Of a stretch of DNA of 64,000 nucleotides, positions 1 to 31,495 are shown piece by piece (the stretch's first letter is position 1; every line of letters begins with the position of its first letter). The notes under the pieces are model-generated. The model was not told the DNA's origin, did not search any database, and was given only the letters and a program-made list of their open reading frames with translations. Source of the stretch: Zygnema circumcarinatum SAG 698-1b (lineage: Eukaryota; Plantae; Zygnematophyceae); NCBI GenBank assembly GCA_037447605.1, contig CM074806.1, positions 4,278,001-4,342,000 of the forward strand, read 5' to 3'. The position numbers and the translations under genes were made by a program.

Positions 1-181
1 GAGAACGGCCCTGCAAGTATGTACGGTATTCAGAGACAAGGGCAGGGCAGGGCCTTGGAAACCCTAATTTTTTCTCGGTCCGTTGCAGGTTGGAGGGGTC
101 AGAAGCAGAGCCGGAGGAGAGCATATTCCATTTTTTGGGTGGTTTTTCCTCTGCACCGAGGGGGCGGGAGAGAGAGGCGTC

Positions 182-2185
182 ATGCATCATCCGGTCAGAG
201 GCGGAGTTCGAGGAGGGAAAGACCGTAAGTCATGCGTTTTTTGTACGGAAGAGAGAGAGAGTAGGGAGATGAGTCGGGGAGAGAGTGAGTGGTAGGGAGG
301 GGAAATGGTATGGAAGGATGACTGAGAGCGGGGAGAGAGAGGCGGGGAGAGAGTGTTTATGTGGGGAGGGAGAAGGAGAGGGAGAAAGTAAGGAAGCTCG
401 TGTCACCTTAGTCAGTAGCTTCTATTGCTAGGGCACAGTTATTCGTTTCTCGCCTGTTTAATTCTCTTAAAAAATATGCCGCTTCTTCCTTCTAACATCC
501 CTTGCAGCTAAATTCAAGAAAGTAATTCAACTTCGTGTTGAATGATGGAACTTCACAGAATTTAAATGGGATGATGTTAAAGCCGACAAGTATCGGGAGA
601 ACTACCTCGGCCACAGTCTCATGGCTCCAGTTGGCAGGTGGCAAAAAGGTGAGCCTTCTTTCTTAACATCCTGGAGCTGTTAGACTTATAAGGAAGAAGG
701 GAGTAAGGACAGCAGCCTTAACAGTCCCTTGACTCCTGTTCCTTTTCCTTTGTTTGTGCAGGCAAGGACTTGCATTGGTACGCGAGAGACGCAAAAGACT
801 CCGCTGCGGATGCGGATGCCATGAGAGACGAGCTTAAGCGAGTTAAGGAGGAAGAAGAAAGTTTAATGGCAGAAGCTTTAGGATTGGCTCCCAAGAAAGA
901 TCGAGGGCCCAAACTTGGCGGGGCGAATTTAGATAAGCATGAATCGGAGCAGCTGTTCAAACGAGGGAAGACGACTGAGCAGGTGAAGCCGGAGTACGCG
1001 GAGGGGGAGAGAATTCAAGGCCTGGGATTTGCTCCGTAAGTGCTACTTGGAAGACCCTTCAACCTTGAAATTGTAGTCGTGCTTGACCCCATAAATCCAT
1101 TGAAATTTATTGAAATTATTGAAGACTGCTGTTTGTGACATTCACTCAATCATGTGTTTCCTTAAGAAGATCGACAGTCAGACAGTTAGCAGGAAATTCA
1201 CTGGAATTCATTCGTGATGGCAATTGATCATGAATCAGGGTAACAGAAAAAATCTGCTCACATGTCTGGAAACAGTACTGTCCAAAAGTAATTTGTTTCA
1301 TTTATTTTAACGGAGAAGTTCTTATGCCCTTCTTAATATGGAAGTTGGCACTGCTGCTTGTGTCTCTGCAGCGCTCCATTTCATGTAGCGAATAAAGGAG
1401 CAAGCAAGGCTCTGGAAGGGAGTCGCAAGGCTGATAAGGAAGCACAAGGTCTTGACGAAGGAAGAGCAGCGACACATACGAAAGGAAAAGAAGCCGCTAA
1501 ACAGGAAATAAATTCACTTAAGTCGAAGCAAGAAGGGGAAGAGGATAGGGAGGAGGGAGCAGGTGGAGGAGAGGAGGGAGAGAAGGCAAGAAGGCCGCGA
1601 AAAAGCCACCAACAGAAAAAGCAGGAAAAGCTAGAGCGAATGGAAAGGTTGAAGGGCAAAGTGAAGGTGGGAAAAAGAGATTTGAAAAGGCAGAGGAGGG
1701 AAGAGAGGACAGCGAGGAAGAGGGCGAGGAGAGCGGAAAGGAGAGCCTTGGAGGAAGCGAATCAGAGTAGTGAGACGAGCTCAAGTGAAGACGAGAAGTC
1801 TGACAAACTTAAGGAGAGAGATGAGAAAGAGGCAACTGTTAGGATGGGTGAGGCTGGAGAGAGGGAACTCGGCACAAGCAGCGAGAGGGAGGGGACGGAG
1901 AGTATGAGGGACAGGGATCGGGAGAGTGATAGAGTGAGTAGAAGGAAGAGAGACATTGGTACTGAGGATTGTAGAGAGAAGGACCGAGGGACGGAAAGGC
2001 GAAGAAGTGAGGAAAAAGAGCCGACACGTCGAAGTGAGGGGACAGAGAGCAGACAGGAGAGACACAGAGAGAGACGGAGGGAAGCGGGACGGACCGAAAA
2101 AGGCGTGAGTGAGAGTGGGAGAAAGAGAAGTAGAGAGGTAGATGGTCGGCCAAAAATGAAGAGGCACGACTCTGAGGATGATTAG
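182..2185 (+). CDS. Multiple myeloma tumor-associated protein 2 (MMTAG2/C1orf35)-like protein with a long charged low-complexity C-terminus; 4 exons
   Basis: Exons 182-224, 559-648, 762-1035 and 1372-2185 join in frame through GT-AG introns. They give [54 protein letters not shown], the MMtag N-terminal signature, followed by an R/E/K/S-rich tail. Confidence 0.9.
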
Positions 2186-23615: not shown

Positions 23616-26141
23616 ACCCTGGGACTTGCGGTGGTGAAATGGGGCTCGATTAGGGTTAGGGTGGTAGGTTTTGGGGGAAAGGGGGGGGGGGGGGGGAGGA
23701 GGAGACTGGCAGGGTTTTGTTTGGTCTTTTTCCTATTTTTGCTTCTCCCCCTTATTTAACTACGTTGGTTATTTTGAGGCCATGGAGCATTTCCTTGGCT
23801 GAAGAAAGGGTTTAGAAGTCGGGCTTAGCCGCCATCTGAATTCTTTCCACCGCTGAGTTGTAGGCGTCATGAGAAGAGGCGTCGGAAGTGGCAGGTCGAG
23901 GGAATACTTTTTCCGCTGGAATAAATAGGTCCTGTGGTGGCGAGGAAGGCCCCGTTCCATGTAGAATGCTCGCTACAGTTGAACAGAAACAGGAACGGAG
24001 CGGATGGAGAGGGGGAAGGGTGTGGGGGGTCCTCTTCTGGCTGAGTTTACTGCTCCAGCTGCTTCGTTAGCAGCTGCCTCAATTCGAGTTTTTTGAGTGT
24101 ACGAAAATTGATAAAGTGAAGAGGGGAGGGTACCGTTCGCAGTTTCCAGCGCAAAGTTTGGAATGTAGTGGTGCCTTCAATGTCAACTGCTCTAGTTTTT
24201 CACAAAAAACCTCTTGTTGTCAATACTGCAAATCATGCATTCGGCCATGCATGCATGCATGCACGCCCTACAGCATCCATACATACTGTATCGTACGGAA
24301 ATCACGTGTCACCCGCTGATTGGTGCCAGAAGGGACTCTTAAGCGGTCGTACGGTCTCGGTCTCGGTCGGCGCGGCGCACGTGAACGAACTGTATGAAGT
24401 GATTTGTCGCGTACTCTGACGACAAAAGACTGTACGACAACCTTGCTGCCGCAGCCGCCCACCCGCAGATCGGGTGTTTTGTCGTCTTTAATCCAAAACG
24501 ACAAAACGGTTTCGGAAGCCGCATCCATTGTCCGTACGGTGGCGGTTTGGACCGGAAGAGAGATCGCATCGGGATAATCGATATATTGTGAGGTGTATCG
24601 ATATGGATGCCGTCATCACCTGTACGTTGCTCACGTCGTAGGGTGGGTGTCCATCAGCGTTTTTTCGCCGACGTGGAGGTACAGGCGTAGTTTTGGAGGA
24701 TGATGTGGCGCCGTCGTGGCGCCGACTAGGACCGACGTGGAGGTACAGGCGTAGTTCCCCAGAACGACCATTCGCGTGCCGCCATGTGGCTACCAAAGAT
24801 CCGCCAGCGTGCGACTGCCACGCTGGCTGGAAGCCGTCAACGCTCGGTGACCGCCGGTCGTGGTTGCAAGTCGCTTCAGCGCCGAGGAAGCTTCCCAATG
24901 TGCAGCCATGGCTGCCGACTTATCTGAAAAACCACGAGGAGAAGCCCGTGTGCCTGCGAACGGACAACGGGCGTTCCATGAGCCAGTCAGCCAAACGGCG
25001 TAGAAGCTCGTTGCAAGAGGGAGGGCTGCGGAGTTAAGCTCCGGTGCTTAACCCTAAAACAGACAGGGGATGAGCACCGAGGGGCCTCTCTTCCCATTCT
25101 CGCCTTAGGATTAGGGTTTGGAGACGGCTCTGGAGCATGCCGGGAGGGGGGGGGCTCTCCCTTTACTTCTCACACCGATGGAGATTTTCTATTAGAGGGA
25201 GGAGGGAGATCGCACTTTGTGAAGGTCTAATGGTCGTGTCGCCGCTCCTCCGCGCTTTAGAAGCAATTGATTAGGGTTGTAATTATTATTATTCTTTTTG
25301 TTTAATTAATTTGAGTATGTGATTGGCAAATTTTCACTGTCAGATTTTTGCTTCCATTCTCTTGGATAGCTTTTTCCAATGATGCTTGTGTTTTGGAGAG
25401 GAAAAAAACGAAATTGGAGCATGTGGTGGCAAGAAGCAAGCAGCAAGAAGCAAGACGCAAGAAACAAAAAGCAAGAAGCAAGAAGCACAAAGCCTGTTGA
25501 CAACAAAGAGAGAAATCAGCCAATGGAGAATAGAGGATAAAAGAGAGACGTATGTTGTCACATGTCCTTTCCACAACTTCCACCACAACAATAATATTTA
25601 ATGCTGGTGAATTGCGAGGCAAACGCCGCGAATGGCTTTGCTGCGAAAGGCAGGGAAGGAGGGAAGAGAAGGGAGCGGAGGTGGCGGCTGTAGTGGCGGC
25701 GGCCGTCGCCTCCTGCAAACCCTAAAAAACTGTCGGTAGCGACGCGCGTACGGTAACCGCAGTGGGCCACGGCGGACGCTTTCAAATCGTGCACGTGGCG
25801 ATCGCTGATTGGAAAACGGTGTTTTGATGGAACTCGTCATTTTATCTGCAAAACGGCGTCCTACGTGGACCGTAACGAGCTCGTCACGAAACGGGCTGAT
25901 GGAAACCCACCCTGAGACAATGGTATGATGGCGTATCGTATCGTATCGTATCGTGATGTGTTCCATCAAATTGTGGTGCTCCATGCGGAGTAGAGCGGTG
26001 ATGACGTCAGCATTTGACACATGGGAAAAGGCCCTCTACAAGAACCTAACAAACTCACAATTTAAAAAAAAAGAGTCAATTTTTGTTTTTCAAAATTTGA
26101 AATTTTAATTTTTATAAAAAAAAATTGTAATTTTCAAATTG

Positions 26142-29100
26142 TCACAAATTGTCGATTTTTGCGTTCATTCTAACAAATGTAATAAACTCGCCATCGCCCT
26201 CCAACGGATTTTTGCCTTCATGGAAATGCCGTTCAACGAATTCCCGCGTGAACGGCTCCCATGCGCCGCCGCCAGGCCGCCGCCCAAAACGGAGGACCTG
26301 CGCGCATGGAACCCCGGGTCCGTTCCGTGAGCCGTGCATCCATGTGAGCTTGAGGAACCCTAAAACCCTAAATGCTGGCAAACCCCAAAACCCTAAATGC
26401 TGGCAGACCCTAAAACCCTAAACGATGGCAAACCCTGAATCCCTAAATGCTGGCAAACCCTAAAACCCTAAATACTGGCAAACCCTAAAACCCTAAACCC
26501 CGCGCAAAGTGGCCATCTCACCTTCTCGTTCCACGGAAAGGAAAAGAAATGGTCCAGCAACGCCCTCGGGGGCTGTCCAATCAGAGGCTGCCACGTGTGC
26601 ATCACAAGCCCCTCCTCCACCGCGTTCCATGTGGCATTGTTCCGTTCCCGTACAGTTGTGGAGACGAGCAGGTCCACCTGCGAACAACGACAGCATGGAA
26701 CCGCGGGATTTGTGAACGCCCCAAAAACAAGAATTTCCATTCATAGTATGACACTGTTCCACCCTAAACCTGAAATTCTGTTACACCATAACGAACCCTA
26801 AATCAAGTAGTTTTCCACCAAAACAAAAAAATACAAATAAAAAGCAAAAACTGAAAACGGACAACTGAAAACTGAAAACTGAAAACTGGAATCTGAAAAC
26901 CTGCCTTGCCCGGAATGAGGCGCAGAGCTGCCTTCACTTTCTTCCGTAAAGTGGTGCGGCCATCGCTCGGGCCGACCGGCACTGCGAGAAGGGGCCGGCC
27001 GAGGGCGAGGGCCTGCTCCATCACCGCGCGCAGGGACACGGGCAGAGCCTCCACCGCCCCTCCCTCCTCGCCCTCCCCCTCCCCCTCTCCCTCTCCCTCT
27101 CCCTCTCCCACTCCCTCTCCCTCTCCCACTCCCTCTCCCTCTCCCTCTCCCACTAACACTCCCTCTCTCTCTCCCTCTCCCTCTCCCACTAACACTCCCT
27201 CTCTCTCTCCCTCTCCCTCTCCCTCTCCTCTCCCTCTCCCTCTCCCTCTCCCTCTCCCTCTCCCGCTCCTCCCGCGGGGGATATGACGCGTCCCGTGGAA
27301 GGGTCAAACAGCGTGAGAAGCGCCACGTGGAGATGGGACACTTTGCACGGAACTGCGGACACGGAACTGGGGAGAGGCAGCTCTCCGATGGCAGCCTGCA
27401 AAGTCAAACATTTCAAGCAACCAAAACTGAAAGTTAGAGAAATATGCAGTTAGGATCTGCAAACTAGCCCAGCCCTTTTTTGGTTTTTTAAGCGAATTTT
27501 CGACTTTTCAGCTTTTACGACCCAATCGGCTGCTTCTGGGTTCATGCAAACCCTAAAAATCTCACAAGCGAAGTAACCCTAATTTTGAGAATACCTGCAG
27601 GGCCAGAACTGAAGCCACATCTCCAGTCCATTGGATGAGAGTAAAAGGAGTGACATTTCCCTCCATGGCGGTCTTTTGCATGCTGTTATTTGCAATAAAA
27701 ATTGCTTCCTGCATATTCGGGCAGCCCAAATTTCCTTAACTTAGAGAGAAAAAATGATATCTTTGATTTCTCGGACACGTAAATTGGCCAAAATTGTCAA
27801 AATCGCATAGTGGAAGCCCTTTGAAGAAGACTAAAAGGGAGAAAAGGGGGCTAGAAATGAAAGAAAAATTACCTCGACAACATTTTTCCGTTTTCCTCTC
27901 CACCCCACCACATTGAAGTGGCCGTACGGGCAGTGCCTGCAGATGCTTCAAACCAAAAATTTGTCAAGAAAAAAGCTCACTGTTGTCAGAAAAAAAAACT
28001 CCAATATGTGCATGGAGATATAAAAAAAAAAAAAAAACTCAGCTTCATCCTTCACTGCCACAGAAAGCAAGAGCCATGCATTCAAAATGCAAAACTGGAA
28101 CTTTATTTCTGACTTTCTGACTTACTGACAACATTACTAATTACATTCAAAATTTTGCAACCAATCACATCATATACTGTAGATATTGGAGAGGTGAAAA
28201 ACGGAAAGGAAAAAAGGAAAAGTGGGGGCGGGATTTTAGGGGATTTTAGGGGTCCTTGCCTGCAGGAATTTCCGCAGCATGTTCCTCTCTCCCGCAGCGC
28301 CGCCATAGTGAACACATTAAAGCCTGCAGCCTCCCTCCGCCAAAACCCTCAAAACCCTAAAAAACACTACACATATTATAGGTAAAAAAGGTACAGTTAA
28401 CAAGTTTGTGAGGTCCTGTATGCATGTATGTGAACTCCGCAAATACTCATTCGCCAATATACATTGCATATGGGGATGTACAGGAGTAATGAATCTGACA
28501 CGTGATCGGGTCCAGGTACATCCGCCGCCTGTTCGCTTGGGCAACTCGGTGCGCTTCCTCAATATCGGGTGGTAGTATCGGCTTCTCCCACACCCCTCCC
28601 AACACCTCCGCCTCCCACACCCTCTCTCTCCGCCCTCTCTCTCTCTCCCCTTCTGGGGAAGAAGCCATCTCCTCTTTAGGTCCCTTTTTGAGTGATGTCG
28701 CCGGAGTCCAATACTCCCAGGGAAAATTTGTGGGCATGATTTCGGGCCGGTTGTGAAGTAGCCCTACCATCCTGCAGGATAGTATATCCTTCCTTCATAT
28801 TCAAATTTGAAGACTTTTTGAAAGAGAAGAAAGAAAAGGGAAACAGAAAACTGACTCACTGACTTTTATAACCAAAAAAATGATGATTTGGGGTAGAAAT
28901 AGAGCCGCAGAGGAAGGGAGGGAGATACCACTCTAATGCATCGACAAGGCGAGGACCGGAGCGGTTGAACATTTGGTCTCCATCTACAAGGACCACTCGG
29001 CCCTCTCTCACAGCGCGGAGGCTCTCCCACCATCTCTCTCTCACTACCCCCTCCAACTCCCTCTGTAAAGCAAACAAGCACAAACAAACCCCAATTGTAC

Positions 29101-30901
29101 CCAATTGAAATAACACTTCAAATTAGACACCCCAAGTTACGTATCCGTTGCAAATCAAACTTGGAAGGGGTGAGACTTGTTAAACCCTAAATTATGTTTA
29201 CCTTTGTTGTGTTAATGTCTAAGCCGCAAGGGCAAATAATGATCCAATCAGGGTCAACTTCAACCACCCTCTCCGGAGCCACTCGAAACGAATCCCCTGC
29301 ACCCCTGAACCCTGCGCTTTCTCCCTCAAAAAACCCTAAAACTCTTCAAAACCGAAAAACTTCAACTACGAACCATTCAAATCTACTCACTTTCCTGCAC
29401 CGGGAAAACCTAAAATCGATGAAAAAAAAGGCCAATCTCAGTAAACCGACAGTGCCAACAAGTCACATAATTCGTCCCTTTAAGACTGCGGCAAAAAAAA
29501 GTCTCTAAATTTTTATCACTTTCAAGTCTTCTTGAAAATCTTCAGGGTTTAGGGATTCTTATGAGGGGACTACCTGCCATTTTTCGAAGGGTTCAGGGGG
29601 TGCAGCCCCCCTGCCATTTCTATAATTTGGGGCGTCCAATGTCCGCCGCAGTAAATGGGGTCCGTCCATTCCATGAACACAATTCGCGGTTTTCCGTTGA
29701 ACGGAACGGAATTGGGCACAAGTTCACATGCAGCTTTCACTCTTCTTCGGAGCGAGTCAGCAGCGGCTACGGCTGCGTCTTCTAGTTCTGAAGGAAGGAA
29801 AGAAGGAAGGCAAAGCAAAAGTTTTTTTTTTTTCATGTAAATGTGATGGAAGGATGAATATGGGCAGTCGAATGACAAAAGAAGAGCAGTACAAAAAAAA
29901 AAAACGTAGTTTCTTTTCTAAAAAGGAATTAAAAAGTTTAAAAGTTTAAGCAAAAGAGGGTTAGTAAAATTTCCATGTATGTGTAGTTACAGTCGAGAAC
30001 AGCCTTCAAACATGGAACCGAAAAAAAGAATTTTTTTTGCTTCTGCAAGAGGTCTGCTTACCTACGGCCTTGCCAACTTTGATGACGTCATCGATAACGT
30101 CCTCCAACGCACCTGGGGCCAGGCTGACGACAGCAGGCTCGGGCTCAATTTCTCTGCTCCCCCACATCCCACATCTGACTGCTTGAACAAAATGCTTCGA
30201 AAAGAAAATCTAAGGAAAAAACTGAATTTCATCCTTTTCTATTAAAAATTAACTGTAAATAACTTTGCAAACTAATACTTTACGACTCACATGATCCAAC
30301 AAAATAAGCGCTTTTGAAATAAACTAAGATTAAATCAAAAGTTCTGAGTCCATACTTTGAAATCCGGTAGACGATTCCTGAGTCTATCGCACATACGCTG
30401 CAAAGCGACTGAGTCAAAATGACGGTCGGTTTCAAATTTTTCAAAGTCTCTTCGTGCAGCACATAAAGGCCTCGCCCTGCGGACAGCGATTCCGATACCT
30501 CTTTATCCACAGCTGCTTACAATAAAGAGCGNNNNNNNNNNCCCCCCCCCCCCCCCCCTTCCCCCAAAAAAGGGTCAAAATCGAATCCTTAATAAAGGCA
30601 TTTGGAGAAGGTCGGACCGACCCAGGTCAACAATATGACCTCCTAAAAAACCCAAATGTCTAAAACTGTAAAAAAAATGGAAAGTATTCGGGAAATATAG
30701 TGGAAAACCGGCACCTGCTGAGTTTGTAAACTTAGTGCGGGAGTCGGTGACGACTGGTCTTTCCTTTACTGAGGGAGGGTAGTCGTCAGAGTGCCCTCTC
30801 CCAACAAGCAAATTTTCTCCTCCAATAAAACCTAAAATTTCAGCGGCGGCGGGAAGGAGGGAAACCACTCGGTGGGAGCGAACATTTAAGGGAGAAGCCA
30901 T
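26142..30901 (-). CDS. Three-domain fusion: BtuF-like (Fe/B12 substrate-binding) domain + Cys-rich DUF5522-like domain + degenerate diphthine-ammonia-ligase-like (PP-loop) domain; ~13 exons
   Basis: Approximate exons 30901-30715, 30512-30356, 30174-30062, 29787-29574, 29304-29202, 29062-28929, 28771-28500, 28323-28260, 27936-27909, ~27709-27597, ~27395-26905, 26677-26522 and 26297-26142. BtuF-like motifs: [68 protein letters not shown]. Cys-rich motif: [22 protein letters not shown]. Ligase-like motifs: [36 protein letters not shown]. Confidence 0.8.
26356..26500. repeat. 25-bp minisatellite (AAACCCTAAAACCCTAAATGCTGGC, ~5.5 copies) in the last intron of the fusion gene
   Basis: Directly visible tandem units that contain telomere-like heptamers. 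Confidence 0.85.
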
Positions 30902-31495
30902 GGTGCGCAGTCTCGAGGCTGCTAAAGGAACAAAAACAAGAAGAGAGGGGAGGGAGGTGGGGGTGTGGGGGAATGGGGAGAAGGAAATTAGAAACTGCTA
31001 TCACATTAGACAATGGTTTGGTAAATACCTTAAAATTTTATGTATTTTTTAGATAAAGACGTAGTGGGTTTCCGGTTTAGCGAGCACGTGTTTGACGCTC
31101 TATTCAGTTTCCAAATATGTATATATATATATATAATATATATTCTTAGTGGCGCCTCGTTTGCACGCATGAACTGATGTTAACGAAAGCGAAAGTCTCC
31201 TTCTTTCAGTTTTTTTTGGTTACTTGACTTCCTTAGTTCGGGTAATGAGAACAATGCACGTTCTGAAAGTTTTTGGGGTTTTTTTTTCAGGGCTCAGCGC
31301 TGCATGGGGAGGGCGAGCAGCCTTGCACGCATCAGGACCGGACTGAACTGAGCGCTCTGCCGATGTATGTGGTAACTGGCGCGCTTGCATGCAGACGATA
31401 AAAACTTGCGAAATAAGCAGAGAGAGAAGGGGAAAGGGGGAGAGGGGGAGAGGGAGAGAGATAGAGAGAGGGAGAAGGGAGGGACGGAGGGAAAA

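Follow-up and report, generated by a model that had tools for sequence, protein, structure and literature searches.

A gene of 13 exons in the charophyte-lineage alga Zygnema circumcarinatum SAG 698-1b encodes a protein in which a BtuF-like binding fold, a DUF5522 module and a relic of a DUF71 domain are joined in one polypeptide. The gene lies on the minus strand of a 64,000-nt stretch of contig CM074806.1 (positions 4,278,001 to 4,342,000, referred to as the window, whose own numbering is used below), and its coding region covers 26142..30901, with the ATG at 30901 and the TGA at 26144-26142. It is a real, spliced and expressed three-domain gene. On balance, we favor the reading that it encodes a cytosolic corrinoid-handling protein of a conserved family, and that the copy in the window is a non-catalytic B12 binder or chaperone. 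Three independent links to B12 point this way: the DUF71-B12 signature of the third domain in relatives, cobalamin-riboswitch operons in bacteria, and a distribution that coarsely follows B12 use. For the handling of B12 after its uptake in algae and protists, the family provides a concrete candidate.

The gene model began as a six-frame reading with an exon chain built by hand, and the exon boundaries were then set by RNA, for which Logan contigs of this alga, taken from four public runs, were placed on 26000-31100. All 12 splice joints were backed by RNA contigs from these runs. The introns are 139-323 nt long; introns 8 and 11 have GC-AG borders, and the other ten have GT-AG. Relative to the longest-open-reading-frame reading, RNA shifted five boundaries, all in frame: exons 2, 3 and 13 were given new starts and exon 7 a new end, and for exon 5 one of two acceptors was chosen. 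A 1445-nt contig of run X1 (record 3) extends from the 5' untranslated region (30922) through exons 1-10, record 18 of run X5 spans exon 7 into exon 11, and exon 11 to the 3' end (exons 11-13) is covered by record 11 of run X3 and record 17 of run X5. The overlapping contigs therefore place the binding domain and DUF5522 on one transcript with the beginning of the third domain, and the single 13-exon transcript of the original prediction was thus borne out. An assembly gap of 10 N (30532..30541, beside a poly-C run) falls within intron 1 (30513-30714). The X1 contig joins 30715 directly to 30512, and the profile alignment of the N-terminal domain is free of gaps; together, these show that no coding sequence is hidden in 30532-30541 and that the frame is continuous. 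Exon 5 has two acceptors 8 nt apart, one at 29304 (runs X1 and X5) that is in frame and one at 29296 (run X3) that breaks the frame, and the latter suggests a possible unproductive isoform.

The binding domain is encoded by exons 1 to 7. Exon 1 (30715..30901) carries the start codon and the first strand of the fold, exon 2 (30356..30512) the CxVC motif typical of the subfamily, with its Cys codons at 30391-30402, and exon 3 (30062..30153) is joined to it by the RNA joint 30153>30356. They are followed by exon 4 (29574..29787), which encodes the EWTDP...GGHW block and served as search query, exon 5 (29202..29304; joints 29303>29573 in X1 and X5 and 29295>29573 in X3), which encodes CPCGLD, and exon 6 (28929..29062), placed by RNA joints. 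In exon 7 (28500..28771), the domain ends at ~28708 and, after a low-complexity linker, DUF5522 begins at ~28572. Residues 8-317 aligned end to end and without gaps with a family hidden Markov model (HMM) built from relatives, at 432.7 bits. The orthologues matched PF01497 (Peripla_BP_2) with E values of 1e-8 to 1e-16; the single exons of the window are too short for Pfam, and exon 6 gave their sole match (E 0.23). The fold opens with a strand at residue 10, and upstream of the start codon a stop is reached before any in-frame ATG, so that a signal or transit peptide would have no space. Most orthologues likewise begin at the fold, and the bacterial members of the subfamily also lack a signal peptide, in line with the earlier proposal that a fold usually found in the periplasm is cytosolic here. 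By its sequence features, namely an inserted segment, the CxVC motif, a CG motif and a conserved His, the domain belongs to a distinct cytoplasmic subfamily.

DUF5522 continues from exon 7 into exon 8 (28260..28323), which encodes the core TCCGNSC and ends in a GC donor, and exon 9 (27873..27936), which finishes the motif, the match stopping at ~27909. Residues 363-417 scored 86.2 bits (E 5e-29) against the family HMM, with CCGNSCRHCPY read across exons 8-9, and the orthologues matched Pfam PF17653 at E 1e-17 to 1e-21. The module comprises ~50 residues and has four invariant Cys spaced C-C-x3-C-x2-C, with a His and a Tyr nearby. This is the spacing of many [4Fe-4S] sites. A Protein Data Bank (PDB) sequence search with DUF5522 returned a ferredoxin as its sole match, at an E value of 0.09 that is too weak to use, and literature searches for DUF5522/PF17653 found no paper. 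The module also occurs in other protein contexts. In a metagenomic protein of 649 aa (P0177), it is C-terminal to an RNA-recognition motif (RRM) and a 2-oxoglutarate-Fe(II) oxygenase (2OG-Fe(II), AlkB-like), and at six bacterial loci (L010, L013, L017, L021, L030 and L038, from Ignavibacteria, a Patescibacteria-group metagenome-assembled genome (MAG) and an unclassified bacterial MAG), it heads proteins of 354-384 aa, the remainder of which had no Pfam match save a weak Por_Secre_tail in one.

The third domain descends from DUF71-B12, a group of the COG2102/PF01902 PP-loop ATPases described by de Crecy-Lagard et al. in 2012 (PMC3541065). That study split DUF71 into Dph6, with the motif EGGE/DxE, and DUF71-B12, with the motif ENGEF/YH, in which His takes the place of Glu188 of Dph6. 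It also found that 75 of 102 bacterial DUF71-B12 members adjoin btuCDF and that the group is anticorrelated with CbiZ in bacteria, and it proposed DUF71-B12 as a CbiZ substitute (PMC3541065). The intact eukaryotic and bacterial relatives of the algal protein keep SGGKDS, GDLHL and GENGEFHT, and the bacterial ones lie near B12 transport genes, cobQ and riboswitches. In the alignment, WSGGKDS, FGDLHLxDIRxW and GExGEFHT are intact in diplonemid, oomycete and many unnamed relatives. SGGKDS is kept in 18 of 38 multi-domain relatives, 17 of which also keep GExGEFHT, and SGGKD[S/A] is kept in 26 of 28 bacterial DUF71 open reading frames (ORFs). Of the non-green relatives with the three-part architecture, the majority retain both SGGKDS and GExGEFHT. 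A profile of the intact domain matched the Dph6-family structure 3rjz/3rk1 with an E value of 1e-10. With HMM or Pfam matches in the window protein or its orthologues, the three domains are those named in the original prediction.

To find relatives, exon 4 was searched against 1.84 billion representative proteins, which gave 872 matches, and HMMs of our own were built from relatives to score the window protein. The long matches carry Peripla_BP_2, DUF5522 and Diphthami_syn_2 according to Pfam. The same architecture was found in the streptophyte algae Spirogloea (three copies) and Chara, in chlorophytes (Chlamydomonas eustigma, Gonium, Volvox, Botryococcus, Tetraselmis and others), in the haptophyte Diacronema, in the diplonemid Diplonema and in oomycetes. 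The binding domain alone was present in chytrids, Glomeromycotina, Endogone, Saprolegnia and bacteria such as Phycisphaerae (Planctomycetota). No land plant and no Dikarya fungus was among the 120 of 532 matches listed, and fungal B12 use is confined to non-Dikarya (PMC8085122); the distribution thus coarsely follows B12 use. In a quick maximum-likelihood tree of the binding domain, the window protein grouped with Chara and Spirogloea (Shimodaira-Hasegawa-like approximate likelihood ratio test, SH-aLRT, 97), and it is 60% identical to Spirogloea over 302 columns. This grouping fits vertical descent in a streptophyte alga. In databases, the relatives are listed only as hypothetical proteins with the label 'Fe/B12 periplasmic-binding domain-containing'. 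Three single-domain matches (P0065, P0064 and P0084) were viewed in their genomic context, which was unhelpful: one was bacterial with uninformative neighbours, and two were eukaryotic-looking.

We also examined bacterial loci that encode these parts. When 185,579 species genomes were scanned with the DUF5522 motif, at least 578 matches were confirmed; 80 loci were kept, and their ORFs were annotated with HMMs. DUF5522 was fused ahead of DUF71 in 27 of the 80 loci, most of these proteins being ~275 aa long, and stood alone in ~40 of them as a protein of 56-108 aa. Two loci from Isosphaeraceae (L046 and L065) encode a fusion of the BtuF-like domain with DUF5522, with genes for DUF71 and a DUF6580 membrane protein upstream. 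In Novosphingopyxis baekryungensis (L048 and L053), a BtuF-like gene lies directly upstream of DUF5522-DUF71, and all three parts are present in an actinomycetotal locus (L077). The bacterial BtuF-like proteins have the inserted segment, CxVC, CG and SH(E/S)C in common with the alga; the ordinary periplasmic BtuF-like proteins of loci L018 and L027 have none of these.

Cobalamin riboswitches (Rfam RF00174, 37-93 bits) were found upstream and on the same strand in five of the 26 DUF71-containing loci (L019, L046, L053, L065 and L077), which come from at least four phylum- or class-level lineages. In L053, a riboswitch of 93 bits is followed by DUF6580, the BtuF-like gene and DUF5522-DUF71; the riboswitches of L046 and L065 scored 69 and 74 bits, and in L019, one of 73 bits precedes a TonB-dependent receptor and DUF5522-DUF71. 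No cobalamin riboswitch was found in 12 control loci with stand-alone DUF5522 (137 kb). At a further locus (L018), DUF5522-DUF71 heads an operon that continues with two BtuF-like genes, FecCD and an ATP-binding cassette (ABC) ATPase, which form a btuFCD-type transporter, and with CobQ. Together with the published DUF71-B12 link (PMC3541065), the fusions, the adjacent genes, the riboswitches and the btuFCD-type operon with cobQ bear out the statement in the original prediction that bacterial homologs of all three parts occur near B12 genes.

Two features of the riboswitch-bearing loci were recorded alongside. The DUF6580 membrane protein of the riboswitch operons (L046 4559-5071, Pfam E 2e-49; L053 4538-5203, E 1e-25) is a candidate corrinoid transporter; its identification with BtuM was dropped, as a PDB sequence search gave just a spurious match to PsbY and left BtuM unmatched. 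In L019, another DUF71 gene (1-243, minus strand), its PP-loop intact (MASWSGGKDS), lies just upstream of the riboswitch-controlled pair of TonB receptor and DUF5522-DUF71.

Several observations weigh against a role in B12 handling or against a working gene, and they are set out here with the alternatives on which they bear. Riboswitches accompany just five of the 26 DUF71-containing loci, and most DUF5522-DUF71 genes are isolated among unrelated genes. The phyletic pattern rests on the partial listing (120 of 532 matches) of a word-filtered search. The function of DUF71-B12 is itself only a prediction made in 2012, and our literature search found no experimental follow-up. Moreover, the third domain of the window protein is degenerate. 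Against a profile of intact eukaryotic members, it matched in three colinear pieces, weakly, with an overall E value of ~1e-6; this establishes descent from DUF71-B12 and not activity. The domain begins in exon 10 (27595..27708), where RNA-supported WTGDVAS (27610-27630) stands at the position of the PP-loop WSGGKDS of relatives. Its core is encoded by exon 11 (26905..27395; GC donor), on both sides of a low-complexity (GE)n insert. In exon 12 (26522..26677), VSTTVR stands at the FGDLHL position of relatives, and in exon 13 (26142..26297; joint 26295>26520), which includes the stop codon, EGDGEFIT (26178-26201) stands at that of GENGEFHT. The window copy thus has neither the PP-loop nor the GDLHL block, and Ile replaces the His of ENGEFH.

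This degeneration is not peculiar to Zygnema. The Spirogloea counterpart of GExGEFHT is GGDGTFFT, and a degenerate third domain was also present in Spirogloea, Tetraselmis, C. eustigma, Gonium, Sanguina, Myrmecia and Diacronema. The (GE)n insert of the window protein sits in the loop after the LLTxF strand; in PF0828, His48, in the region matching this loop, was placed around the ATP phosphates (PMC3541065). In an AlphaFold2 (AF2) model of the Spirogloea orthologue, which is the closest to the window protein and stands in for it, the third domain was predicted as alpha/beta with a predicted local distance difference test score (pLDDT) of 75-90, so the tail looks like a folded pseudoenzyme and not a disordered remnant. 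The catalytic motifs are lost, and therefore the window copy is probably a non-catalytic binder or chaperone; the enzymatic remodelling that the original prediction had offered as one of its possible roles is unlikely for this copy.

The reading frame of exon 11 bears on a different explanation, in which the gene is a decaying remnant under relaxed selection, a real frameshift stops the protein within the repeat and the transcript has no specific function. Exon 11 is 491 nt long, and in the assembly the frame in which it is entered differs from the frame in which it is left. The slip coincides with one 5-nt unit (~27228-27232) among the 6-nt units of a (GGGAGA)n array (27050..27276; 27066-27269 according to Tandem Repeats Finder, TRF, with period 6 and 34 copies), and one shortened unit among hexamers is the kind of error that assemblies typically contain. 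RNA contigs break inside the array, reaching at least 37-44 nt into the repeat from either side, and we infer that the transcript continues over the ~145 nt of the array. The frames used on either side of the slip are those that match the orthologues, and the slip is therefore read as a repeat-length error or polymorphism and not as the mark of a dead gene. An intron that would rescue the frame of exon 11 was judged unlikely, though this is unproven: the only GT sites lie within GGGAGTGTTAGTGGG units of the purine-only tract, and contigs enter the repeat from both sides. Decay would also account for the loss of every catalytic motif and for the frame-breaking alternative acceptor at exon 5. 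However, the N-terminal domain and DUF5522 are highly conserved, as their identity to Spirogloea and profile scores given above indicate, the sequence beyond the slip can still be aligned with Spirogloea in the frame expected for it (34% over 141 residues), splicing of the last two exons is correct, and a folded structure is predicted for the degenerate tail of the orthologue. We therefore regard decay as very unlikely.

A more serious alternative concerns the ligand. What the binding domain holds could be an iron chelate, a bare metal ion or a tetrapyrrole such as heme, and the protein would then act in iron, heme or metal homeostasis and not in B12 metabolism. In a PDB sequence search with the family profile, the best match was the 'iron-binding' substrate-binding protein 4m7o (E 4e-16), and the heme binder ShuT was found beside Vibrio BtuF (5ysc, E 1e-12). 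In the AF2 model of the Spirogloea orthologue, the pLDDT of the N-terminal domain was mostly >90, and Foldseek with this model placed tetrapyrrole binders first (PhuT, BtuF, RhuT, BhuT and ShuT, with template modelling (TM) scores of 0.74-0.83), PhuT, which binds heme, being the top match; siderophore binders scored lower, at TM 0.46-0.67. Sequence and fold thus put the domain equally near to heme binders and to BtuF. No curated NCBIfam model fits the subfamily: against the BtuF equivalog NF002894, the domain of the closest orthologue scored 27.6 bits, where the cut-off is 234, and the other relatives tested gave no match. The term 'BtuF-like' in the original prediction is therefore right for the fold and is no statement of membership; as regards the size of the ligand, it is plausible.

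Relatives are also labelled 'iron complex transport system substrate-binding protein', and the invariant Cys and His could coordinate a metal directly. Yet the 'iron' names are automatic family-level labels, and bacterial members of this exact subfamily lie behind cobalamin riboswitches, together with DUF71-B12 genes. Moreover, land plants and Dikarya, which also depend on iron and heme, were absent from the matches listed. A ligand other than a corrinoid thus seems to us rather unlikely, with a chance that is not negligible.

We also considered that the family might act on protein or RNA, by an amidation like that of Dph6 or in a modification associated with AlkB, with the binding fold as a scaffold. 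The Pfam name of the third domain is 'Diphthamide synthase', one UniRef entry is called a diphthine-ammonia ligase, and DUF5522 is also found with an RRM and an AlkB-like oxygenase. The other fusion partners of DUF5522, including the proteins without Pfam matches, indicate that it is not specific to B12, and it looks like a general accessory module. On the other hand, the intact members have ENGEFH in place of the EGGE/DxE of Dph6. The motif EGGE/DxE188 is absent from the window protein and its intact relatives, and the window protein ends 10 residues past the motif position, with no RidA domains. In addition, the residues predicted to contact elongation factor 2 (EF-2) differ in the B12 subgroup (PMC3541065). 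Bacteria carry these fusions behind B12 riboswitches. To our knowledge, bacteria have no diphthamide. Action on protein or RNA is accordingly the most improbable of the explanations weighed here.

Returning to a cytosolic corrinoid handler, the N-terminal domain would hold the corrinoid and DUF5522 a metal or iron-sulfur center. In lineages with an intact PP-loop (the diplonemid, oomycetes, many uncultured protists and bacteria), the third domain could use ATP on a side chain of the corrinoid, and this action may serve salvage, repair or remodelling. In the green algae, Zygnema included, and the haptophyte examined, the domain lacks the ATP-site motifs but is still predicted to fold; the window copy most likely binds B12 in the cell without catalysis and hands the cofactor on, for example to B12-dependent methionine synthase. 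A broader proposal, which we put forward as a tentative possibility, is that the family is an intracellular corrinoid-processing machine of protists and many bacteria, and that in green algae and haptophytes it is a pseudoenzyme chaperone feeding methionine synthase. The intact form would then bind imported cobamide and spend ATP on its repair or remodelling, for instance through the re-amidation of a side-chain carboxylate or the removal of an unsuitable lower ligand, with DUF5522 as an iron-sulfur or metal center. In animals, the role of a cytosolic B12 chaperone is taken by CblC/CblD, which offers an analogy for this broader proposal.

The protein can be set beside several known systems. 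BtuF of BtuCDF (1n4a, 5ysc) and PhuT/ShuT/BhuT have the same two-lobed class III fold (Pfam Peripla_BP_2). Unlike BtuF, the window protein lacks a signal peptide and, in the eukaryote, a partner ABC transporter, and the domain of its closest orthologue scores far below the equivalog cut-off; the window protein has two extra domains, and its insert and its CxVC, CG and His motifs are common only to the cytoplasmic bacterial relatives. Dph6 (PF0828, 3rk1) has a homologous N-type ATP pyrophosphatase fold, whereas the family has the motif of the B12 subgroup and no RidA domains, and the window copy has no PP-loop. The algal protein CBA1 is required for B12 uptake and has been described alongside bacterial BtuF (PMC10828217); both CBA1 and the window protein are linked, or proposed to be linked, to B12. 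From the description of CBA1, the window protein is set apart by its lack of a signal peptide and by its other domain set, as the original prediction had supposed. There is no sequence relationship to CbiZ or to CobT/CobS/CobC; the function of the family members is a predicted one, and the window copy lacks the ATP site. Genetic support for B12 handling in algae exists for CBA1 (uptake) and COBT (remodelling), and algal remodelling needs COBT, with no CbiZ found in Chlamydomonas (bioRxiv 10.64898/2026.08.07.738727).

The DUF71-B12 prediction itself goes back to 2012. PMC3541065 deals with prokaryotic proteins; here, DUF71-B12 is fused to DUF5522, in eukaryotes also to a BtuF-like domain, and in the alga it is without the ATP-site motifs. 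Our literature search found no paper describing the three-domain fusion, and term searches of PMC3541065, of algal B12 papers (including the August 2026 preprint) and of PMC8085122 found no eukaryotic fusion, cytoplasmic CxVC subfamily or DUF5522. The triple fusion acts as a 'Rosetta stone' that ties DUF5522 and DUF71-B12 to a tetrapyrrole-type binding fold and makes the 2012 prediction testable, and the loss of motifs in green algae and haptophytes allows a clean natural comparison of a binder form with an enzyme form.

Some minor features of the locus were noted. Intron 12 contains a 25-nt tandem array (26356-26501; 5.7 copies) made of telomere-like units (AACCCTAAA), which recur in other introns (~28340-28365 and ~27555-27575). 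The RNA joints 26501>28341, 28647>29829 and 30559>28612 were treated as assembly chimeras in which telomere-like or low-complexity repeats had been joined. In run X2, a joint with GT..AG on the plus strand omits 180 nt (26745-26926) in a region shared by intron 11 and the final part of exon 11; it may represent an antisense spliced RNA. An unspliced contig over intron 10 (27371-27623) was deeper (42.7 in X3) than the spliced form, for which intron retention, DNA carry-over or a separate small transcript are possible explanations. Finally, the poly-C run of ~19 nt (30542-30560) lies directly beside the assembly gap, and loose poly-C ends of RNA contigs were found there.

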